DNA from: Anolis carolinensis
Taxonomy: Eukaryota
Length of the DNA: 64,000 nt
Direction of reading: 5' to 3'
NCBI RefSeq assembly: GCF_035594765.1
Contig: NC_085844.1
Span: 74,601,923-74,665,922 of the forward strand
Shown in pieces: positions 16,569-44,888 of this stretch (its first letter is position 1; the number at the start of each line of letters is the position of its first letter). The notes beneath the pieces are model-generated. The model was not told the origin of the DNA. It searched no databases and was given only the letters and a program-made list of their open reading frames with translations. Position numbers and translations under genes: made by a program.

Positions 16569-18237
16569 ATAGAAAATTAAATAAAAGGACTATAGAGGAA
16601 ACAGTCTTCATTAATGTAAAATATTCTTCAGGTATTAAAAGACCCATAGGCTGCCAGACCCGAAGGAGCCACTAAAGCCCATCATAATTTGTGTGGCTGT
16701 CACTAGTTTATTCCTTGTGTGTGTGCAGATACATCTTACTTTTAGGGAGAGAAAAAAACAGGACTCACATGGAACAAACAAGAATAAAATCATAGGACCT
16801 GAGGAAAAATAGGGACTACAGCCAAGAGTCAGACACATGAACTGGTTGATCACTAACACCAAGAAGTGTTGCATGATGTCTGGGGGGTGGGGGTGAAATG
16901 CATATATTCATAGAAATGTCAATGCCAAGAAACAAGTATTCAAATTGTATCTGTTCAACAGAAGCCCCTGAAAGCCCCCCCCCCCCCCCAAAAAAAAAAG
17001 TAAAATAAAGGCAACAGACAAAAACTTTATTCGGACAGGCTTTTAGAAGTGAAAAGGAGCTGTAAGTGTTCTGCTCTGTTGTTTTGATTGGATTGTTTAT
17101 TGTTTTTAAACTCTTAGAGGGTGTGCTTTTAATATGGTTCTTCGTTTAATTCAGTTTTAATGTGACTTTTAGTATGCTTTTAATTGTAATCTTTTAAATA
17201 TGTAAGCTGATTTGAGTCCCAATTTTTGGGAAAAAGCAGACTATAAACAAATACGATGATAATAAATATGACTGCTTTACAAGGTACTATGAATCACTGA
17301 AACCTTCTCAAGAACAGCACCATATCGATCATTGCTCCGAAATATCCATTATTTATGGTGCTCAAATTTTGGAAGACTTTCACTAAATCTTAGTGGACTA
17401 AAACTGATGGACAATGATGTTAGTGATTGTATTAAGAAATGTGAATTCCAGCAAAAGAGATGTGGGTGTTATTTGAAGTCAACTTTGAAGAGGGACTAGA
17501 ACAAGGTTAAGGAAATTTTACAATACCAAATTTTCATAACAGACAGCAAGTTCTCAAGACGTGAATCATTTTTTAACAAAAGACCCACAGGATAGATTCA
17601 ATATTTTGGAAATAACTGTGAAATTCCAATATCTATTACCTCTGCGCACTTCAACATGAATGAGTATGAATCAATAACTTAACAGATAATGAATGAAATA
17701 ATTATGTGATGTTTAACAGATGTGACATTCATTCAATACTGGATTCAAAGTACTCAAAACAGATCATATGGTTCCAATAATGTCTTCTGAATAGAGCAAT
17801 AGGGAAGTCACCTTGGATTCCTGCAACCATCCCAGTTTGGATTTAAGGTAAAAATAAAGTCAATTTTCCAAAGGGAAAATGATCCAGCAGAAATCCCCCA
17901 AAAATATTTTCTTCCACATTCTTGTTTATGTGATGGTTTTGTGTGGTTTTTGCAATTGTGGTTGAAACCCTTTGTTTTTACTGGTGGCTTATCTACCCTA
18001 GTAAGTTATTAACATTGAATGTATGCTTTGGTGATTTCTGTGTATGCTTCTCTCCAACTGGGTAGAAATCTGGCTAATATTGACTACACCACACTGCTAT
18101 TCCCTCTCCGCCATGAGGACAAATGATTGCCTGCATTTATATTCCACTCACCGGGAGACGCGATATGAAGACAGTTCATAACCAAAGATGCATAAAGAAG
18201 AGGAAATCTGAATTTAGGCCACCAACTTACTGTAGAT

Positions 18238-18372
18238 CAGTGGTTCTCAACCTATGGATCCCCAGGTGTTTTGGCCTACAACTCCCAGAAATCCCAGCCA
18301 ATTTACCAGCTGTTAGGATTCCCGGGAGTTGAAGGCCAAAACATCTGTGGACCCACAGGTTGGGACCCACTG
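18238..18372. mobile_element. hAT MITE, 135 bp; paralogous copy at 30210-30344, so it predates the duplication
   Basis: TIR cagtggttctcaacct, 8-bp TSD ctgtagat. Confidence 0.85.
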
Positions 18373-18672
18373 CTGTAGATGAACAGTAAAGAAGATTGAT
18401 ATAGTGAACATTGATCTTTTGCACTTTAGTACTGTTCTAAAGTTGCTTTGTTCTGCTTTCTCAAAACTCCAAGCTTTTTCCCCAGATATTTAATTTTATT
18501 AATATAACAGTTCACCATAACATTCAAACAACACCACACGTATTACAGACCATACAGGCACCCAAAACCCCAATCCCACACAAAATAAAACCTCTTTCCC
18601 AGACCCATGCACCCTTCACCATGACTTCCGATAACTGAAGCACTATGAAGCCTTTAAGCCAATTTATCTACC

Positions 18673-19528
18673 TGTCAGGACCCTGGCTGCAGAGCACCAA
18701 AAACCTTACACAGAGGCCAGTCTCTATCTAATATCTTTATTAAAGAAATATATAAAATCAATAAAAACAAGTGAAGAATATAGTTCAGAAGCAGACCTTT
18801 CAGATAAGGTCAAATATAGTCCAGAAATGTATTGTCCAATATAAGATATTAGAGTTCAAAGTTTTAATCCACTTGACCGAAACACACACTTTGCCAAGCA
18901 ATAGTGTGGGGAAATAACAGAGTCTTTAAAGTCCAATGAAGCTTGACAACAAGGCTGGAAATAAACTTGATTCTTGACTAGATCCGTGACTGGAGGCAAG
19001 ACGAACATGAAGCATGAAACAGAGTCCGTGGTAAAACCGTGAGACAAGGCAAGGCTTGAAGCTTGATCCGGGAAGCAAGGAACTGGGATTACGAAGTCCA
19101 CACACGATCTCTCTCCTCAAGCTGATCAATTGACTCCGCAAAGAATCCCTCGCGCCAAACACCTATATTGGGTCTCGTTTTCCCGCCAACAGAACTCTTT
19201 CCCTAGAGAAACCCAACTCTGTCCAGATGCATGACTCCTTAGAATTTCCCAAGGGAAGCAGACCTAATCAGCCATTTGTTTGGCAGCGATTCTCAGGCTT
19301 CTCCGATTAGCCTCCCTGACTCCCCTATCTTTAGAATAATTTTCCCTCCTGGAAAACGGGGGGGAGTTCTGCCCAAGGCCTGTTTGGCTGAATTCTTGAG
19401 GGCAAACATCAACATCCTGCAGGTGAAGAGACTCCGGCTCTTGCTGAACCGGCGAAAATCCCATGTTTTCCTCTTCGTCTGCCACAATAGTACTAGGAAC
19501 AGGACTACAAGGCCCATGAGTCATCACA
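18673..19528 (-). mobile_element. Solo LTR, 856 bp, unit A only
   Basis: TG...CA ends, 5-bp TSD CTACC (18668-18672 and 19529-19533), empty site in unit B near 30697; TATA-like and AATAAA signals on the minus strand. Confidence 0.85.
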
Positions 19529-19822
19529 CTACCCTTGTCCATTGCCTAATCCTAAATTCCTAATGGCACTCCTCTATGTCACTGACACTCCACTCAGATA
19601 TGCCATGGCCAACTTCCACTTTTCCAGAAAGTCCTCATTACTTTTGTTCCTCCTATTTTGGTTAGTTTGGCCATTAGCATATATTCCTGCATTCTCTCCC
19701 TCCAATCGTTTTTAGTTAAACTTTTTTCCCCATTCCGGTCTTTGGCCATGGTTAATCTTGCCATGGCAAAGCTATATTGGTGTATTTTTGGTCCTTTTGA
19801 TCATTGTTTTCTCTATGTAAAC

Positions 19823-20576
19823 CAGTGGTTCCCAAACTTATTTGGCCTACTGCCCCCTTTCCAGAAAAATATTACTCAACACCCCCTGGAAAGGGTGGGC
19901 GTGGCTTAGAGGGTGGGCGTGGCTCCTGCTCAAGAGGGCAGGGCTGAGCCTTTCCCCTAGTCCAAGATGCAGGGCTGCGAGGGGAGGTGGGCAGGGCCAC
20001 AAATGGGCAGCCAGGACTGGGATGGACGGAATTACAAGCTCTGAGGCAGGGCTGAGCTTCTATCCCTGTCCTGCAGCACCTGCCAGGACACAGGGGGCGT
20101 GGCTAGAGGAGGGGCCGGAGCCTATTCCCAAGTGCCTGACGGGGCTGAACCTCTATACCCCACCCCTGTGTTCTAACAAGCGCTTCAGGGGAGGTATATA
20201 GAGGCTCAGCCCTGTCTCCTGCTCTTGGCAAGAGGCCCCACCCTTGCCCCTAGCCCCCCCCCCCCCCTTTAGTCCTAAAAGGCCTCTCAGGAAAGGTATA
20301 CAGGCTCAGCCCTGTCTTGGGCTCTAGCTCTGCCATCTGTGTCCCAACACGTGCCTCAGGAGAGGTATAGATTCTCAGCCCACTCAGCCATGCCCACTCT
20401 TCTAGCTCCGCCTCCTGTTTCCTAACAGGCACCTCAGGGACTTAGCCCTGTCTCCAGCACTTGGGAAGAGGCCCCGTGCCCCGGCCCCACACCAAATGCA
20501 CCTGTGGCTATCACCGCCCCCCTGCATCGCTGCAGCACCCACCAGGGGGCAGTAGCACTCACTTTGGGAATCACTG
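19823..20576. mobile_element. Non-autonomous hAT transposon, 754 bp, GC-rich, unit A only
   Basis: TIR cagtggttcccaaa / tttgggaatcactg, 8-bp TSD atgtaaac, empty site in unit B near 30982. Confidence 0.9.
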
Positions 20577-20816
20577 ATGTAAACCTAACAAACACAACCC
20601 TATGCTTTTTTAATCTTATTATGTAGCATTTTATTTGTCTCCTTAAGTTTCCTTATCCCAAAATGCCTGTATGGTCTCACAGGTCCACCAAATATGGAGG
20701 AATGTCTCCTTCTGTTTCCTACACCTCCAGCAAATACTTTGTTGCGATTTATCTATCTTTCCCAATGTTGCTGGGTCAAAGCTCCAAGCCTTTAATTGGA
20801 CACTCCCTTTGTCCAA

Positions 20817-20973
20817 TCAGGATCCTAGGTATTTGGTATGCCTTCCTTGGGCTATCAATCTTCCAGTTGCTTTGTTTGTTAAATCCACGGTGGTAAAGGC
20901 CAGCCTTTTTCCTTGCTTGAGGATCTCAGCAGTGATCAGGATTTCATCTCCAATCTTAGCTGCCGACACATAG
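20817..20973 (-). CDS. ACOT13: ACOT13 copy A exon 3 (terminal)
   Basis: YVSAAKIGDEILITAEILKQGKRLAFTTVDLTNKATGRLIAQGRHTKYLGS then TGA; AATAAA on the minus strand at 20630-20635. Confidence 0.95.
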
Positions 20974-23117
20974 CTTGAAGGTGATAAGAAAGAAAGGGGG
21001 ATAAGATTTTTTTCCATTGTCCATGGTTTCTCATTTCATTTTAACCTACCAACCCTGAGGTAGGGAAGGCTGAGACAATTAATGGTCCAAAATAATGCAG
21101 CAAAATCCACAGCTGATGTTGCATATAAAGCTGACATAGAGTTGCATGGTGTAGTTGTGAATAAAGCAAAGATGGGAGACATGTGGCCCTTCACATGTTG
21201 GCCTCCAACTCTCACTTAGCCGAATGAGAACTCTCAATGCTAAGAGACCATGGAAGTTGTAGCATACATTGCTCATTCCTGGCATAAAGCATTGGAAAAA
21301 CAGGAGTTCAAAGTCCCATTTGGACCATAAGGCTCACTGGATGACCCTGCCCCAGTCATACATAACCTACTTCATGGGGATACTGGAAGGCTAATGCAGG
21401 ATAAAAGGACCATCTATGTGTACCAGAACTTCTTGGAATTAATTCAAAATAAAACAAGGTTCAAACATTCAAAATGCTACTCAGGCTTCCTAACAGGTTA
21501 AAGTGGTTGGTATGAAGATTTCTAGTTCTAATCCCAGACTCCAAGACTATATGTAGCAGTCTTGGGAAAATGTGGGGGTCTCTATCTCAACAGTACAGTA
21601 TGTGCTTTGCATGTTGAATTTCTGGTGTCTCTTTATCAAAGATTTGAGAAGCCATTACCAGTCAATATAGACACCTAGATGGACCAAAAGTCTCCTCACT
21701 GAGTGCACAGCAGGTGCCTGTATCCCCAGGTAACATCAGCACACATGCCCAGATTCCAGCTTCTGCTTTCTACATACGTACAAACTAAGATGACAAATTG
21801 TGATGGTAAACAAAACAGAAATAAGGGCTGCACTACATATGAGGGCTCTAAATCTTCAGAAAATGTGGTCTCTGGTCCCATTTTTGTAGCTCTCAAAGAA
21901 AGCCCCGACACACTTCACAGATCACACTATTCCATTTCTTCCAGATTTTTTTTGTTAAGCAGTATGGCAGAGTTGTCTGTATACTTTCTCCAAATGTGAG
22001 ATTCCATCTTTTCCCCTCCGTAACCCACAAAACACTTTTTGAATCCAAAAGTGAACACTGTGGGTTTAGTTTCAGGACACATCCTCCCAACCCCTCCCAT
22101 GGATATTAAAATTGGTGGATGCTCAAGTCCCATTATACAATGCCATAGAAAACGGAGTCCCTTATATAAAAATGGCAAAATGAGGGGTTGTTTTTTTTCC
22201 CAATGGGTGAGGAAGAAGAGCTTTCAAGCTATGAATTGTTGAATACATAGGAGCAACAACTGTGGATACAGAGGGTCAACTGTATTTTGTAGAGTTTCTT
22301 TTGATTGGGAATCATGAGAAAACCTTCCAAACCACTGACATAAGTGACTGTTAGCATATCCTTTCTGCCAAAAATGTCCCACTCGACAATTTGCCTGGCA
22401 GAAAGCCAGAAGTAACATTAATTCCAAAGGACCACCAAGAGACTAGTGTAACCCCTGGGGAAGAAGGCTGTCCTGTACTCCCTAAAAGCTGCCCATCCTG
22501 GCACAAAGGAAGTCTTTCCATATGCGTTGAAGCATGAAGTGCCACAACCTAGGGTGCATCTATATACTGTATAACTAATGCAGTTTGACAACATTTTCAC
22601 CACTGTGCCATTACACTATGTAACACAATTTTTATTCCTGGGTTATAAATGTCATTTCCTAATTGGTTCTATCATAAAAACATGGAAAAGGTTTATTAAA
22701 CTTCAAACACTTTGTTTTTGTGGGACATCTTCTGCAGCATGTATTGTTGTAGTTTTTCAGTGAATATCTGAGTCTAAACTAATGCAATATAGTTTATGGC
22801 TGCTACAAAAACAAAGCTTCTGGAGTATAGTTTCAAAGTAGGAACCACACAATTAAATAGGAATAACACTCTCAAACCAGGAACATAATGTAATGCTATG
22901 GAATCATAAGACATGAAGTTTTGCAAATTCTTTAGCCTTCTCTGCCAAACATTGCTGCTGTCTCACCAAGATGACAACTCCCACGACCTTCTAGCATTGA
23001 GACAATGCAGTTAAAAATGGCGTCCAACTGCTTTAATTCTATAGTTTAAATACATCCCCTAGACTCTACATATACATGGGAACAAAAATGGCACAACCCC
23101 ATATCTTTGATACCTAC

Positions 23118-23302
23118 GTAATATTCATGTCCACACTGACTCCAGGTGCTCCTCGTTCACTGTGCAGCAAAGCAGCTGTCGACACGACATCAATGAGTGT
23201 TGCCGTCAGCCCTCCATGCAGAGTTCCTCCCCGGTTTGTGTGCTCTTCTGCTACCTCCATTCCACAGACTACTTTTCCAGAGTCAGCAGAAAGAACTGTC
23301 AT
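23118..23302 (-). CDS. ACOT13: ACOT13 copy A exon 2
   Basis: Hotdog-fold thioesterase motifs HTNRGGTLHGGLTATLID and GVSVDMNI; cag| acceptor, AC|GTAGGT donor. Confidence 0.95.
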
Positions 23303-23934
23303 CTGGGAACAGGGGGGGGGGGGAGAAAACCAACTCTGTTAAGTTCCAGTAAACTTTTTACATACCATGAAACTGAAATATAATGCTTTCTTGTTTTTCA
23401 CAGTCACATAGGGCTTTTTAGGACAACATTCAGAATATTGCCTTGAGGATTCTGGGAATTATAGTCCCAGAATGTTGGCAAGTAAGTTTTGCCAAATTTT
23501 GTATATGACATTAGTGCAAATACAAATAGGTAATTCTTTACAAACTAGGTACTCTGCCTGTCATCAGGCCCCTAGGAAAATAACAAGGAGAAAAAGTGGG
23601 AAAACAATCCCCCAAAGCTGAATATGGTGGGTATTGAGAGGAACTGCTCTGGACATTTTGGAATTGCAGGTACTAAGATGTATAGTTCACCTGCAATCAA
23701 TGAGTACTTTGAACTCCACCAAATACGGAATTTGACCAAACTTGGCACATAGAGCCTCCATGACCCAGCAAAAAATACTGGACGTCTTTGGTGGGAATTC
23801 ACCTTGATTTGAGGGAGTTTTAGTTCACTTACATCCAAAAAGCACTGTGAATCCAAACACCGATAGATCTGGACCCAACTTGCACACATACCTGATATGC
23901 CGAAATTTGATTACTGGGGGGGGGGGGGGGGGTT

Positions 23935-24987
23935 AGTGATCTGTAATTGGCTAAGTGAACGAACCCAAAAGATGCTCACCAATGCATTTTTTTCATCCTG
24001 GAAAGAAGTGATAAGTGGAGTGCCCCAGGGTTCCGTCCTGGGCCCGGTACTGTTCAACATCTTTATTAACGACTTAGACGAAGGATTAGAAGGCACGATC
24101 ATCAAGTTTGCAGACACCAAACTAGGAGGGATAGCTAATACTCCAGAAGACAGGAGCAGAATTCAAAACGATCTTAAAAGACTAGAGATGGGCGGAAACT
24201 AACAAAATGAAGTTCAACAGGGACATTTTTCACTTCGGCAGAAAAATTGAAATGCAAAGATACAAAATGGGGGACGCCAGGCTCAACAGCAGTATGTGTG
24301 AAAAAGATCTTGGAGTCCTCGTGGACAACAAGTTAAACATGAGCCAACAATGTGATGCGGCTGCTAAAAAAGCCAACAGGATTTTAGCCTGCATCAATAG
24401 GGGTATAGCGTCTAGATCCAGGGAAGTCATGCTCCCCTTCTATTCTGCCTTGGTCAGACCACACCTGGAATACTGTGTCCAGTTCTGGGCACCGCAGTTG
24501 AAGGAAGATGTTGACAAGCTGGAAAGCGTCCAGTGGAGGGCGACTAAAATGATTAAGGGTCTGGAGAACAAACCCTATGAGGAATCGCTTAAAGAGCTGG
24601 GCATGTTTAGCCTGCAGAAGAGAAGGCTGAGAGGAGACATGATAACTAGCCATGTATAAATATGTGAGGGGAAGTCATAGGGAGGAGAGATCAAGCTTGT
24701 TTTCTGCTGCCCTGGAGACTAGGACACAGAACAATGGCTTTAAACTACAGGAAAAGAGATTCCATCTGAACATGAGGAAGAACTTCCTCATTGTGAGAAC
24801 TGTTTGGCAGTGGAACTCTCTGCCCTGGAGTATGGTGGAAGCTCCTTTTTTGGAGGCTTTTAAGCAGAGGCTGGATGGCCATCTGTAGGGGGTGCTTTGA
24901 ATGCAATTTCCTGCTTCTTGGCAGGGGAGGGGATTGGACTGGATGGCCCATGAGGTCTCTTCCAACTCTACGATTCTATGATTCTAG
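23935..24987 (+). mobile_element. CR1 LINE, 5'-truncated, in ACOT13-A intron 1 (followed by an L2-type tail to about 25087)
   Basis: [21 protein letters not shown] and FAD RT motifs; attctatg tail; absent from unit B. Confidence 0.93.
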
Positions 24988-25544
24988 AATGCTGTCGTGT
25001 CTGGGCATGGCCCCATGTAAGCCGCCCTGAGTCCCTCCGGGGAGATGGGGCGGGATATAAGAATAAAATTATTATTATTATTATTATAGGAGGAACTGAC
25101 CTTTCTTTCTGGGAGTTGTAGTTCACCCACAACCAGGGAAACTGTGACCTCCACCGATGACGGACCTGGACCATACTTGGCACACAGAACCCCATGACCA
25201 ACCCAAACTACCGAGGGGTTTGAGAGAACTGACACATCATAGTGGGAGTTGTAGTTTACCCTATAGCCAGAGAGCACACTAAACCCCACCCATGATGTAT
25301 CCTGAGCAAACTTGCCAAACATAACAAACTTTAAGTACAGATGGTGTTTCTCGGTGTTAACCTGGCATGATGTCAGTTGTAGTTCACCCACGACCTTAGG
25401 CATTTTGTACAGCTAAAAAATGTTGCTGTTTTTTTTTTTTCAAATAACCCAGGCAATGACGGGTATTCAAGCTGGTCTGGGATAAACAGAAAACCTGGGA
25501 TCAGATCCTGGGATATAGGGCCTGTTTGGAAAGGCCCTCTAAAG

Positions 25545-25679
25545 CAGTGGTTCTAAACCTGTGAGTCCCCAGGTATTTTGGCCTACAACTCCCAGAAATC
25601 CCAGCCAGGTTACCAGCTGTTAGGATTTCTAGGAGTTTGAGGCCAAAACATCTGGGGACCCTCAGATTGAGAACCACTG
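25545..25679. mobile_element. hAT MITE, 135 bp, unit A only
   Basis: TIR cagtggttct / agaaccactg, 8-bp TSD ctctaaag; empty site near 37926. Confidence 0.85.
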
Positions 25680-25958
25680 CTCTAAAGCGTAAGCAGCCAA
25701 TGCTTTTCACGGCTCAATTGGGGAAAATACTCACTTTGCTGTCCTGACCAAGGTCACCCTCACAACCTCTGAGGATGCCTGCCACAGATGCAGGCGAAAC
25801 GTCAGGAGAGAATGCTTCAGGAACATGGGCATACAGCCTGGAAAACTCACAGCTACTCAGATTTCATCTCGGTGTTTTGTCAGAAAAGGCAAAGATCTCA
25901 CCTCAGCATTCCCTCAAGCTCTCTCTCTTACACACACACACACACACAATATGGCTAC

Positions 25959-38082: not shown

Positions 38083-38388
38083 CAGTAGTATCTCACTTAT
38101 CCAAGCTAAACGGGCTGGCAGAAGCTTGGATAAGCGAATATCTTGGATAATAAGGAGGGATTAAGGAAAAGCCTATTAAACATCAAATTAGGTTATGATT
38201 TTACAAATTACGCACCAAAGCATCATGTTATACAAAAAATTTGACAGAAAAAGTAGTTCAATACGCAGGAATGTTATGTTGTAATTACTGTATTTACGAA
38301 TTTAGCACCAAAATATCACGATATATTGAAAACATTGACTACAAAAATGGCTTGAATAATCCAGAAGCTTGGATAAGTGAGACTACTG
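38083..38388. mobile_element. Tc1/mariner-type MITE (same family)
   Basis: Same TIR and body, TA flanks. Confidence 0.8.
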
Positions 38389-38449
38389 TAGTTGATAAAG
38401 CCCAAGCTCTCAGCTCCATTTCAGTTGGGGAAAGACAAGGATTTCATCT

Positions 38450-38682
38450 CGTTGAAGGCTCTCATGGCCGGAATCCCTGGGTTGCTGTGAGTTTTCCGGG
38501 CTGTGTGGCCATGTTCCAGAAGCCTTCTCTCCTGACGTTTCGCCTGTATCTGTGGCAGGCATCCTCAGAGGTTATGAGACCTCACAACCTCTGGGGATGT
38601 CTGCCACTGATGCAGGCGAAACGTCAGGAGAGAATGCTTCAGGAACATGGCCACTACAGCCCGGAAAACTCACAGCATCCCA
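38450..38682. mobile_element. Penelope-like inverted terminal-repeat pair in ACOT13-B intron 1
   Basis: Two opposed arms; flanked by the direct repeat gatttcatctcg. Confidence 0.8.
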
Positions 38683-38774
38683 GATTTCATCTCGGTTTTT
38701 TTGTCAGAAAAGGCAAGGATCTCACTTCAGTATTCTCTCAAGCGCTCTCTCTCTTACACACACAATATGGCTAC

Positions 38775-38858
38775 CTTGTTTAGCACTCGATCAAAACCCG
38801 ACGCCTCCGTGACGGCCTTCATCCCCTCGCGAAGGGACTGGAGCGTGGAGCGGTTCAT
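38775..38858 (-). CDS. ACOT13: Acyl-CoA thioesterase 13 copy B, exon 1 of 3; CDS complement(join(31220..31376,33477..33661,38775..38858)), 141 aa
   Basis: MNRSTLQSLREGMKAVTEASGFDRVLNK, donor AAG|GTAGCC; head-to-head with TDP2 as in other vertebrates. Confidence 0.92.
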
Positions 38859-39020
38859 GGTAGTGAAGAGGTCCAGGAGAAAAGCGTAACTGCGGTTCCC
38901 GGAGAAACAAGCGGCCCGCGCGGACCCCCCGCATCCGTCATGGGGCGTGGCTTCTGGGAGGGTAGGGACCCATTGCGCATGCGGGGGGTCCGCGCGGGCC
39001 CGCTTGCTTCTCCAGGCAAG
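38859..39020. promoter_or_regulatory. Bidirectional ACOT13-B/TDP2 promoter (162 nt between start codons) containing an inverted repeat
   Basis: CpG-rich; NRF1-type TGCGCATGCG, Sp/KLF GGGGCGTGG, ZNF143-like CTACCCTCCCAGAAGC (minus strand); arms 38901-38934 and 38979-39013. Confidence 0.85.
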
Positions 39021-39203
39021 ATGGAGGCAGACAGCACGGCGCAAGGGCGGGAGCCGGAACTGCTGCGACCCTCTGAGGAAGAGGAGCGGCGGGAAAAGCT
39101 TGAGGAGACCCGGAAGCGCCTTTGCCTGGACTTTGCCAACGTCAGCGGCACGGACGTAGCTGTTGCCCAGTGCTACTTGGCAGAGAATGACTGGGACATG
39201 CAA
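39021..39203 (+). CDS. TDP2: Tyrosyl-DNA phosphodiesterase 2, exon 1 of 7; CDS join(39021..39203,42843..42922,44011..44184,45422..45513,45923..46041,47107..47277,50042..50323), 366 aa
   Basis: aagATGG start; UBA-like segment RKRLCLDFANVSGTDVAVAQCYLAENDWDMQ; CAA|GTAAAT donor; total 1101 nt in frame. Confidence 0.93.
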
Positions 39204-39523
39204 GTAAATGAAAGACTGTGGACCCATGCTAATTGTTTTGACCATTTCTACCGTCATTTATATACTCCCCTCTATAGGACCTCCAGTGCGACTCTGTGGC
39301 AGATGTTGACCACAGACAGAGCCTTGCTAGAGGATCTAGAGATTCCAGGCAGGAAACAGTCAGGGCCAGCAAACACCCCCAACAAAGGATCCCCCAGGCA
39401 GGAAGCAGCCAGGCTTTGAAGCTGCAAGGCTATTCAGTGCTAATCAGGGTGGCCAACTGCAACATTCACTCTTGCCTCAGGCAAACAAGAGTTCTTTCTC
39501 CCATCCTGGACATTCCACAGATA

Positions 39524-39844
39524 CAGTAGAGTCTTACTTATCCAAGCTAAACAGGCCGGCAGAACCTTGGATAAGCAAATATCTTGGATAATAAGGAGGG
39601 ATTAAGGAAAAGGCTATTAAACATCAAATTAGGTTATGATTTTACAAATTAAGCACCAAAACATCATGTTATATAACAAATTTGACAGGAAAGTAGTTCA
39701 ATACGCAGTAATGTTATTTTGTAATTACTGTATTTACGAATTTAGCACCAAAATATCACGATGTATTGAAAACATTGACTACAAAAATGCCTTGGATATT
39801 CCAGAACCTGGATAAGCGAGTCTTGGATAAGTGAGACTCTACTG
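39524..39844. mobile_element. Tc1/mariner-type MITE inserted in a Penelope fragment (about 39340-39978)
   Basis: Same TIR; splits the Penelope sequence at cagata|tataaacccc. Confidence 0.85.
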
Positions 39845-42842: not shown

Positions 42843-42922
42843 AGAGCTCTGAATTCTTATTTTGAGCCACCACTTGATGAACCGGCCATGGACACGATGC
42901 CTCCTCCTGTAACAGAGACCTT
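42843..42922 (+). CDS. TDP2: TDP2 exon 2
   Basis: ttctag|AGA; RALNSYFEPPLDEPAMDTMPPPVTET; TT|GTAAGT. Confidence 0.93.
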
Positions 42923-44184: not shown

Positions 44185-44657
44185 GTAAGTACTCACAGCA
44201 TTCATCCTATGATGCTTCTTTGAAATAACTGTGGCTTTTTTCCAAACAAAACCACAGGTGAAAAATAAAATAGAAGGACAGGTCCCAACATTTATCAAAT
44301 ATTTTTAGGTGTCTAGAAGTGTTTCTAAATTGCACTTTTATTTTACAACTGTCATATATTTTAGACCTTAATAACTATTATTCAGACCTTAATAACTATT
44401 ATTAAAAATAACATTTTTGACTAATTGTTCTGTAATGGGGAGAAAAATACTTTTGGAGGTCCCAGTGTAGTTTAAATATACACCAGAATTTGGTCGCAGA
44501 ACTTTTGGATCAGCTTTCTAATAGTTTTACACTAATGTGGCTTTTGGAAACCAAAAGCCAAGAGGTTTTTTGGTTCTGCAAAAATCATACGTCTGTCTCT
44601 TAGATCACGGATACAGGTGCTTTATTTCACATGAGAGTAGAAGTAAAATCAGTCAGA

Positions 44658-44888
44658 TGCTGTGAGTTTTCCAGGCTGTATGGACATGTTCTAGAAGCAT
44701 TTTTTTCTGACGTTTTGCCCACATCTGTGGCAGGCATCCTCCGAGGTTGTGAGGTCTACAACCTCTGAGGATGCCTGCCATAGATGTGGGTGAAACGTCA
44801 GGAGATAATGCTTCTGGAATATAGCCATACAGCCCGGAAACTTCACAGCAACCCAGTGATTCCAGGCATGAAAGCTTTTGACAACACA
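44658..44888. mobile_element. Penelope-like inverted pair in TDP2 intron 3
   Basis: Opposed arms of about 95 nt around 44750-44758. Confidence 0.8.

Follow-up and report, generated by a model that had tools for sequence, protein, structure and literature searches.

The promoter between the divergent genes ACOT13 and TDP2 in anoles is built on a long palindrome, and the two arms of this palindrome carry substitutions that mirror each other. The mirrored bases differ between the single locus of Anolis sagrei and the two tandem copies (A and B) present in Anolis carolinensis. The aligned sequences show a palindrome that drifts in sequence without losing its symmetry, as is characteristic of concerted evolution. 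We hold the best reading of these data, and a probable one, to be the homogenisation of one arm by the other, through template switching or through hairpin-templated repair or conversion. All coordinates refer to the window, which is the whole stretch of 64,000 nucleotides of A. carolinensis DNA that was analysed (NC_085844.1, positions 74,601,923 to 74,665,922).

Palindromic promoters in copies B and A

The start codons at 38858 (− strand) and 39021 (+ strand) are divergent and lie 162 bp apart, separated by a GC-rich interval. With starts less than 1 kb apart and both genes transcribed, the interval is a head-to-head bidirectional promoter. It contains an inverted repeat, for which the initial annotation had given arms at 38901–38934 and 38979–39013 with one mismatch, one indel and a 44-nt spacer. 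The sequence matches this description exactly. The mismatch is an A at 38907 against a G, and the indel is 1 nt long. When mismatches are allowed in the inverted-repeat search, the repeat grows to 38896–38944 and 38969–39018, with a spacer of 24 nt. Folded as single-stranded DNA, it reaches −53.3 kcal/mol (z = −8.0), a value equalled by none of 200 shuffles. The features of copy B and of its flanking exons are as follows.

38775–38858 (−): coding exon 1 of ACOT13-B, the divergent partner gene; 28 codons, with the ATG at 38858
38896–38944: left arm (ACOT13-B side), core 38901–38934; reproduced with 0 differences in the sequencing runs X13 and X18; B-specific mirrored bases at 38922 (G) and 38926 (C)
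38945–38968: spacer; inner right-arm sequence that has survived, with a GC/GT box (GGCGTGGC) and CTTCTGGGAGGGTAGGG, the left partner of which is deleted
38969–39018: right arm (TDP2 side), core 38979–39013; mirrored bases at 38991 and 38987
39021–39203 (+): coding exon 1 of TDP2; 61 codons, UBA region

The right arm holds an NRF1-like motif (TTGCGCATGCGG, matched to the consensus by eye) and stops 3 nt short of the TDP2 ATG. At the inner end of the left arm, the pairing of 38935–38944 needs three mismatches, and this segment may alternatively be a remnant of the old centre.

Both genes of copy B are transcribed. Run X18 gave one contig of 723 nt that matches 38775–39203 exactly. Its ends continue into ACOT13 exon 2 (from 38775) and into TDP2 exon 2 at 42843 (from 39203). 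The contig is RNA, since exon 2 is joined at both ends and the introns are without coverage; it shows expression and splicing of ACOT13-B as well as of TDP2. RNA k-mers from this run, the contigs of which show neither strand nor ends, cover the entire copy-B palindrome without a break. Because the RNA covers the whole palindrome, the divergent transcripts overlap, or one of them starts beyond the centre.

In copy A, the palindrome (26080–26238) has 79-nt arms that are 94% complementary and separated by 1 nt. Its predicted fold reaches −106.1 kcal/mol (z = −23.8). The features of this copy are the following.

26080–26158: left arm; mirrored A-specific or A-state bases at 26107 (T), 26111 (A) and 26130 (G)
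26160–26238: right arm, next to the centre base 26159; mirrored bases at 26211, 26207 and 26188
26239–26286 (+): remnant of TDP2 exon 1; ~130 nt deleted, start codon lost, splice donor kept

The last ~41 nt of TDP2 exon 1 remain in copy A with an intact GT donor. The right arm of this copy may be the driver of a non-coding transcript. The copy-A motif CGCGCTGACA is present at 26102–26111 (+) and again at 26207–26216 (−), and copy B carries the pair cgcgcGGACC and GGTCCgcgcg, one in each arm. The paired differences between the copies that were described at the outset (cgcgcTGACA against cgcgcGGACC) are therefore real in the sense that they are mirrored in both arms of both copies. The sites are T at 26107 and 26211 against G at 38922 and 38991, and A at 26111 and 26207 against C at 38926 and 38987.

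The two copies belong to a tandem duplication of approximately 11–13 kb, which self-comparison of the window places at ~16666–27074 (A) and ~29647–39820 (B) with 87–93% identity. The duplicated unit comprised ACOT13, the promoter and the start of TDP2; the deletion in TDP2 exon 1 of copy A came later. The duplication is placed in the A. carolinensis lineage. A frame search with exon 2 of ACOT13-B returned two ACOT13 proteins from A. carolinensis (97% and 88% identity) and one from A. sagrei. The locus of the first A. carolinensis match (GCA_035594765.1, CM069370.1) is 100% identical to 21220–48858 of the window. Exon 2 of ACOT13 encodes HTNWGENMHGG in copy B (33476–33763, −) and HTNRGGTLHGG in copy A (23117–23338, −).

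The anole promoter can be described as two inverted copies of a module of ~77 bp, set back to back. From the centre outward, the module would consist of a GC/GT box (GGGGCGTGGC), CTTCTGGGAGGGTAGGG, an NRF1-like site (GCGCATGCGC), a variable 7–8-mer and a GC-rich leader. The labels NRF1-like and Sp/KLF-like (for the GC/GT box) come from matching by eye to known consensus sequences, and we take these to be candidate sites only.

Two smaller features were seen at the edges of the palindromes. Between the ACOT13 ATG and the palindrome there are ~38 nt in both A. carolinensis copies (38859–38895 in copy B) and ~15 nt in A. sagrei (L002:9986–10000). The extra leader of A. carolinensis loosely resembles the outer arm (GGAGAAAAGCG compared with GGAGAAACAAGCG) and may be a small tandem duplication. 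At 26039–26270, copy A has short open reading frames on each strand that yield one and the same peptide of ~30 residues (MRNGALPSQKPRPVTGRGFWEGRAPLRMR...). These twin peptides arise because the palindrome is symmetric; they are trivial and no sign of coding.

Ancestry of the palindrome

ACOT13 and TDP2 are arranged head to head in every squamate locus examined. A. sagrei has a single ACOT13 adjoining TDP2, and its orthologous palindrome is 154 bp long. The arms of 77 nt are 99% complementary, with one mismatch and no spacer, and the predicted fold reaches −119 kcal/mol (z = −24). Sceloporus is without a long palindrome; its interval of 300 bp holds no more than two inverted copies of the AGAAGCCACGCCCA box, a pair of 25 nt that flanks an NRF1-like site. 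Such a palindrome was not found in the orthologous interval of Pogona. Nor was one found in a contig from a distant squamate, the only match to an open-frame search that ran from the TDP2 ATG into intron 1. The long palindrome therefore arose in the anole lineage, before A. sagrei and A. carolinensis split.

Since the single-copy locus of A. sagrei has the full palindrome, the full form is ancestral, and copy B lost 34–36 nt from its inner left arm. The initial annotation had offered two possibilities, that B had lost 36 nt of the inner left arm or that A had gained them. The comparison with A. sagrei decides for the loss. A gain of the inner arm in copy A by fold-back is ruled out by the same full palindrome in a single-copy species. 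Two equally parsimonious alignments place the deletion differently. In one, the junction is 38944/38945, and the deletion spans the old centre with GGG/GGGGC microhomology. In the other, the junction is 38934/38935, inside the left arm. The deletion lengthened the spacer and halved the hairpin energy.

In Sceloporus undulatus (L003:9752–9878), the 25-nt GC/GT-box pair is 84% complementary across a gap of 77 nt and has a central NRF1-like site. The boxes point toward their genes, as in Anolis, and the order of box and NRF1-like site is reversed. A single simple inverted duplication, applied to the Sceloporus order (box, NRF1, box), did not yield the Anolis order (NRF1, box, centre, box, NRF1).

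Mirrored changes and their origin

The arms were compared in a six-arm alignment containing both arms of A. sagrei, copy A and copy B, with the right arms reverse-complemented. Three palindrome-bearing loci from two species are thus represented. Columns 28, 30, 32, 35, 46 and 51 vary from locus to locus, yet within any one locus both arms show the same base. Three such states occur at column 32, where A. sagrei has G,G, copy A has A,A and copy B has C,C. With A. sagrei as the outgroup, column 28 (T to G) changed in both arms in the B lineage, and column 51 (T to G) changed in both arms in the A lineage. At both columns, the derived base in either arm is what a reverse-complement copy of the other arm would give. 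The duplication was followed by at least three mirrored changes: one at column 28 in B, one at column 51 in A and one at column 32, in copy A, copy B or both. Columns 30, 32, 35 and 46 are mirrored between species.

Across the three whole palindromes, 96.3% of cells are paired, and 6 of the 75 pairs (7 cells) changed on both sides. This confirms the covariation that the initial annotation had proposed to look for: only 1 of 500 shuffles reached the pair count, none of 500 reached the cell count, and slid controls gave 0–1. A permutation test found five mirrored columns between A. sagrei and copy A and five between A. sagrei and copy B (each P ~5e-6). The comparison of A with B alone is weak (2–3 mirrored columns, P ~0.03). 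The same base was taken in both arms at 7 of 8 co-located events, for which a hand calculation with a 1/3 chance per site gives P ~0.003; this value conditions on the co-located changes, and the co-location test is inflated if the variable 7–8-mer is a shared hypervariable slot.

Grouping of the arms leads to the same picture. All parsimony-informative columns inside the palindrome group the arms by locus and none by left or right side, as had been expected of arms that evolve in concert; the sole conflicting column lies at the outer edge. The maximum-likelihood tree joins the left and right arms of B (81/83) and the left and right arms of A. sagrei (93/90). With locus-wise grouping and with mirrored states of its own in A. 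sagrei, the earlier proposal that the arms were re-synchronised after the duplication is supported. The related claim, that each arm is closer to its partner than to the same arm of the other paralog, holds within the core arms. When all 47 shared columns are compared, three of the four arms conform to it; the exception is the right arm of B, which is equally far from the left arm of B and from the right arm of A (5 differences each).

The arms of A. sagrei and A. carolinensis differ at 10–13% of columns, and the surrounding 611 nt differ at ~16%. Simple purifying selection does not explain the identity of the arms, because they are not unusually conserved. The differences between the two arms of each locus are listed here.

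A. sagrei: 1 difference over 77 columns
A. carolinensis, copy A: 6 differences over 80 columns
A. carolinensis, copy B: 6 differences over 49 columns

Since the duplication, most arm changes have remained unmirrored, so homogenisation in A. carolinensis would be patchy.

Under arm-to-arm copying, a strand that is being synthesised or repaired would fold back and use the partner arm as its template. A change in one arm would then be either erased or copied to the other arm. The palindrome would drift almost as fast as its surroundings and retain its symmetry. After the duplication, A and B would have been homogenised separately, which would give the paralog-specific mirrored bases. Copy B would subsequently have lost the 34–36 nt at or next to its symmetry centre, in what would be a typical palindrome-stabilising deletion. 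The inverted repeats are predicted to be able to form hairpins, with fold z values from −8 to −24 across the three loci. Through template switching, an inverted repeat that is almost perfect is made fully so, and compensatory changes of several bases appear with no need of selection (PMC5453318, PMC8794818). In yeast, high transcription stimulates such events (PMC3820800). Copying is read here from end states at three loci in two species, so that tract lengths and event counts are poorly constrained.

Compensatory selection for pairing is the alternative that fares best, and we consider it possible but clearly less likely than copying. Here, mutations in a single arm would be deleterious until matched in the other, and the selected structure would be a DNA cruciform (with supercoiling from divergent transcription) or an RNA hairpin in the 5′ leader. 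The high fraction of paired cells, the six covarying pairs and the very strong hairpin energies all agree with such selection. So does the spliced RNA contig, which spans the whole palindrome unbroken while the flanking introns are uncovered, so that some RNA does span the centre. However, four of the seven double changes, with pair types assigned by eye, are transversion swaps (T:A to G:C and G:C to C:G), for which there is no wobble intermediate. Only one of the seven is a CpG transition (column 32, CG to CA in copy A). These proportions favour copying over stepwise compensation and over mutational hotspots. A perfect stem of 77 bp (−119 kcal/mol as DNA) in a 5′ leader would be expected, from general knowledge, to block scanning, and this harm again favours copying over stepwise compensation. 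The right arm of copy A no longer has a TDP2 gene beside it and still carries the A-specific bases at columns 51 and 32, which also argues for copying; the mirrored changes were kept there though no TDP2 mRNA is made. Copy B, for its part, tolerated the loss of 34–36 nt and six arm mismatches and is still transcribed and spliced.

A broader account would have the 154-bp palindrome itself under selection, as a cruciform or as an RNA hairpin in overlapping divergent transcripts that balances the expression of ACOT13 and TDP2. On this view, genuine compensatory evolution of a structural promoter element conserved across anoles would lie behind the mirrored substitutions, and the deletion of the centre in B would be a regulatory change that accompanied the divergence of ACOT13-B. 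We regard this account as unlikely.

Parallel selection on mirrored transcription factor sites, with each arm serving as the core promoter of one gene and binding the same factors, would need no pairing. The arms do carry recognisable promoter boxes. Sceloporus, which is without the long palindrome, has the inverted AGAAGCCACGCCCA pair over 25 nt, so that the symmetry of the sites predates the palindrome. However, most of the mirrored changes fall in the variable 7–8-mer between the conserved boxes, where the three loci have three sequences. Independent acquisition of the same base in both arms at seven events is unparsimonious, and the right arm of copy A has no gene to serve. Parallel selection on sites is therefore improbable as the source of the mirrored bases.

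Chance, or parallel mutation at hypermutable mirrored positions such as CpG, we consider very improbable. The comparison of A with B alone, taken by itself, would leave some room for it, and the column 32 event in copy A is indeed a CpG transition. Once A. sagrei is included, though, P falls to ~5e-6 per comparison, and the count of six double-changed pairs is reached by 1 of 500 shuffles, with 0–1 in the slid controls. Of the seven events, four are transversions. CpG transitions account for one of the seven, so CpG hotspots are rejected as the main cause.

Copy B was re-observed in run X13, which is independent DNA. Its contigs tile 38790–38948, 38919–39015 and 38995–39075 with 0 differences and cover both B arms and the deletion junction. 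The same run contains an A-type contig with the letters of A, a strand-switch joint where the A arms collapse, and the deletion junction in exon 1 of A (TTGGAGCTTGGAC). Resequencing, on which the initial annotation had let the mirrored differences stand or fall, thus upheld the bases of copy B in full; for copy A, it recovered the flanks and the turn-around, and the variable heptamers are not in those contigs. An assembly artefact, with palindromes or mirrored bases arising as long-read errors such as fold-back chimeras, is scarcely credible: palindromes are a known trouble spot for assemblers, and the copy-A heptamers are absent from the contigs shown, but two independent runs agree with B at every base, the A-type flanks, turn-around joint and exon-1 junction recur in run X13, and in the independent assembly of A. 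sagrei the palindrome lies at the orthologous position between unique flanking sequences.

A further contig of run X13 fits the window from 38942 rightwards; ahead of that point it carries 214 nt with no counterpart in the window. The letters adjoining 38942 in this contig (CACTGGCAAAGGGAAGCCACGCCCAGTGAC) share the centre-left of copy A and not its arm. The contig represents either a structural variant of palindrome A or a third locus with the same box–centre–box core. For two further organisms (runs X21 and X22), contigs compared with the window at 80% likeness gave no match, and neither did metagenome contigs scanned for the palindrome centre.

An origin of the palindrome from a transposable element (MITE- or SINE-derived) was rejected. 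Within the window, the arm core is found only at A and B, and the boxes are common to the non-palindromic promoter of Sceloporus. The window holds other near-perfect palindromes with arms of 64–104 nt, at 38505–38654, 1873–2024, 44647–44861 and 30203–30351. At least two of these belong to one dispersed repeat family, and one lies only ~120 nt beyond exon 1 of ACOT13-B. Hairpin-forming repeats seem to be common in the A. carolinensis genome.

Comparison with known systems

Long spacer-free palindromes are regarded as unstable, and it is debated whether 'compensatory' double substitutions in stems come from selection or from copying. The anole promoter offers three natural states: the near-perfect palindrome of A. 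sagrei, copy A, which is intact and has lost one flanking gene, and copy B, which has lost its centre. Together they form a compact and tractable system in which hairpin potential can be set against arm homogenisation, and in which the need of promoter function for symmetry can be addressed. They also make plain that covariation alone is no proof of a selected structure, as a stem-like DNA repeat in a promoter passes the covariation tests used here. Literature searches, both on the ACOT13/TDP2 promoter and on bidirectional promoters of palindromic build, returned no described case.

The closest likeness is to template switching in quasi-palindromes (the Ripley model; Loytynoja & Goldman 2017, PMC5453318; Monttinen & Loytynoja 2022, PMC8794818). 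There, too, an imperfect inverted repeat acquires changes that are reverse-complement copies of the partner. Multi-base 'compensatory' changes arise there without selection, and high transcription of the DNA promotes the process (PMC3820800). The arms in described events are usually ~10–30 nt long, and the events were detected singly, between closely related genomes or within RNA genes. In contrast, the anole arms are 77–79 nt long and make up a whole bidirectional promoter, and repeated events would have occurred both between species and between paralogs.

The ampliconic palindromes of primate Y and X chromosomes (PMC7999016) likewise show concerted evolution, with arms that are near-identical within a species and diverge between species. 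Those palindromes have arms of kilobases to megabases, long spacers and genes, and they evolve by homologous recombination. The anole palindromes do not belong to this kilobase-armed, spacer-containing type: their arms of 77–79 nt with a spacer of 0–1 nt are shorter than recombination usually requires and lie in a promoter. Deletions that stabilise a palindrome by removing its centre (PMC7999016) resemble the loss in copy B, where 34–36 nt at or beside the symmetry centre are gone and the spacer is longer. Unlike the experimental deletions, the one in copy B would be a fixed germline event recognised by comparison, with breakpoints that are ambiguous between two alignments.

As in structured RNA stems, Watson–Crick pairs have been swapped for Watson–Crick pairs, and covariation exceeds that of the controls. 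As a stem, the anole palindrome would greatly exceed those of functional RNAs in length and in perfection, and transversion swaps predominate in it. With vertebrate bidirectional promoters of the CpG type, it shares divergent genes, a GC-rich interval and motifs that are NRF1-like and GC-box-like. Ordinary promoters of that type hold short palindromic sites, without being long perfect palindromes in their own right. The process is thus one already known, from hairpin maintenance by template switching and from arm-to-arm conversion in large palindromes; it is the object that is unusual.
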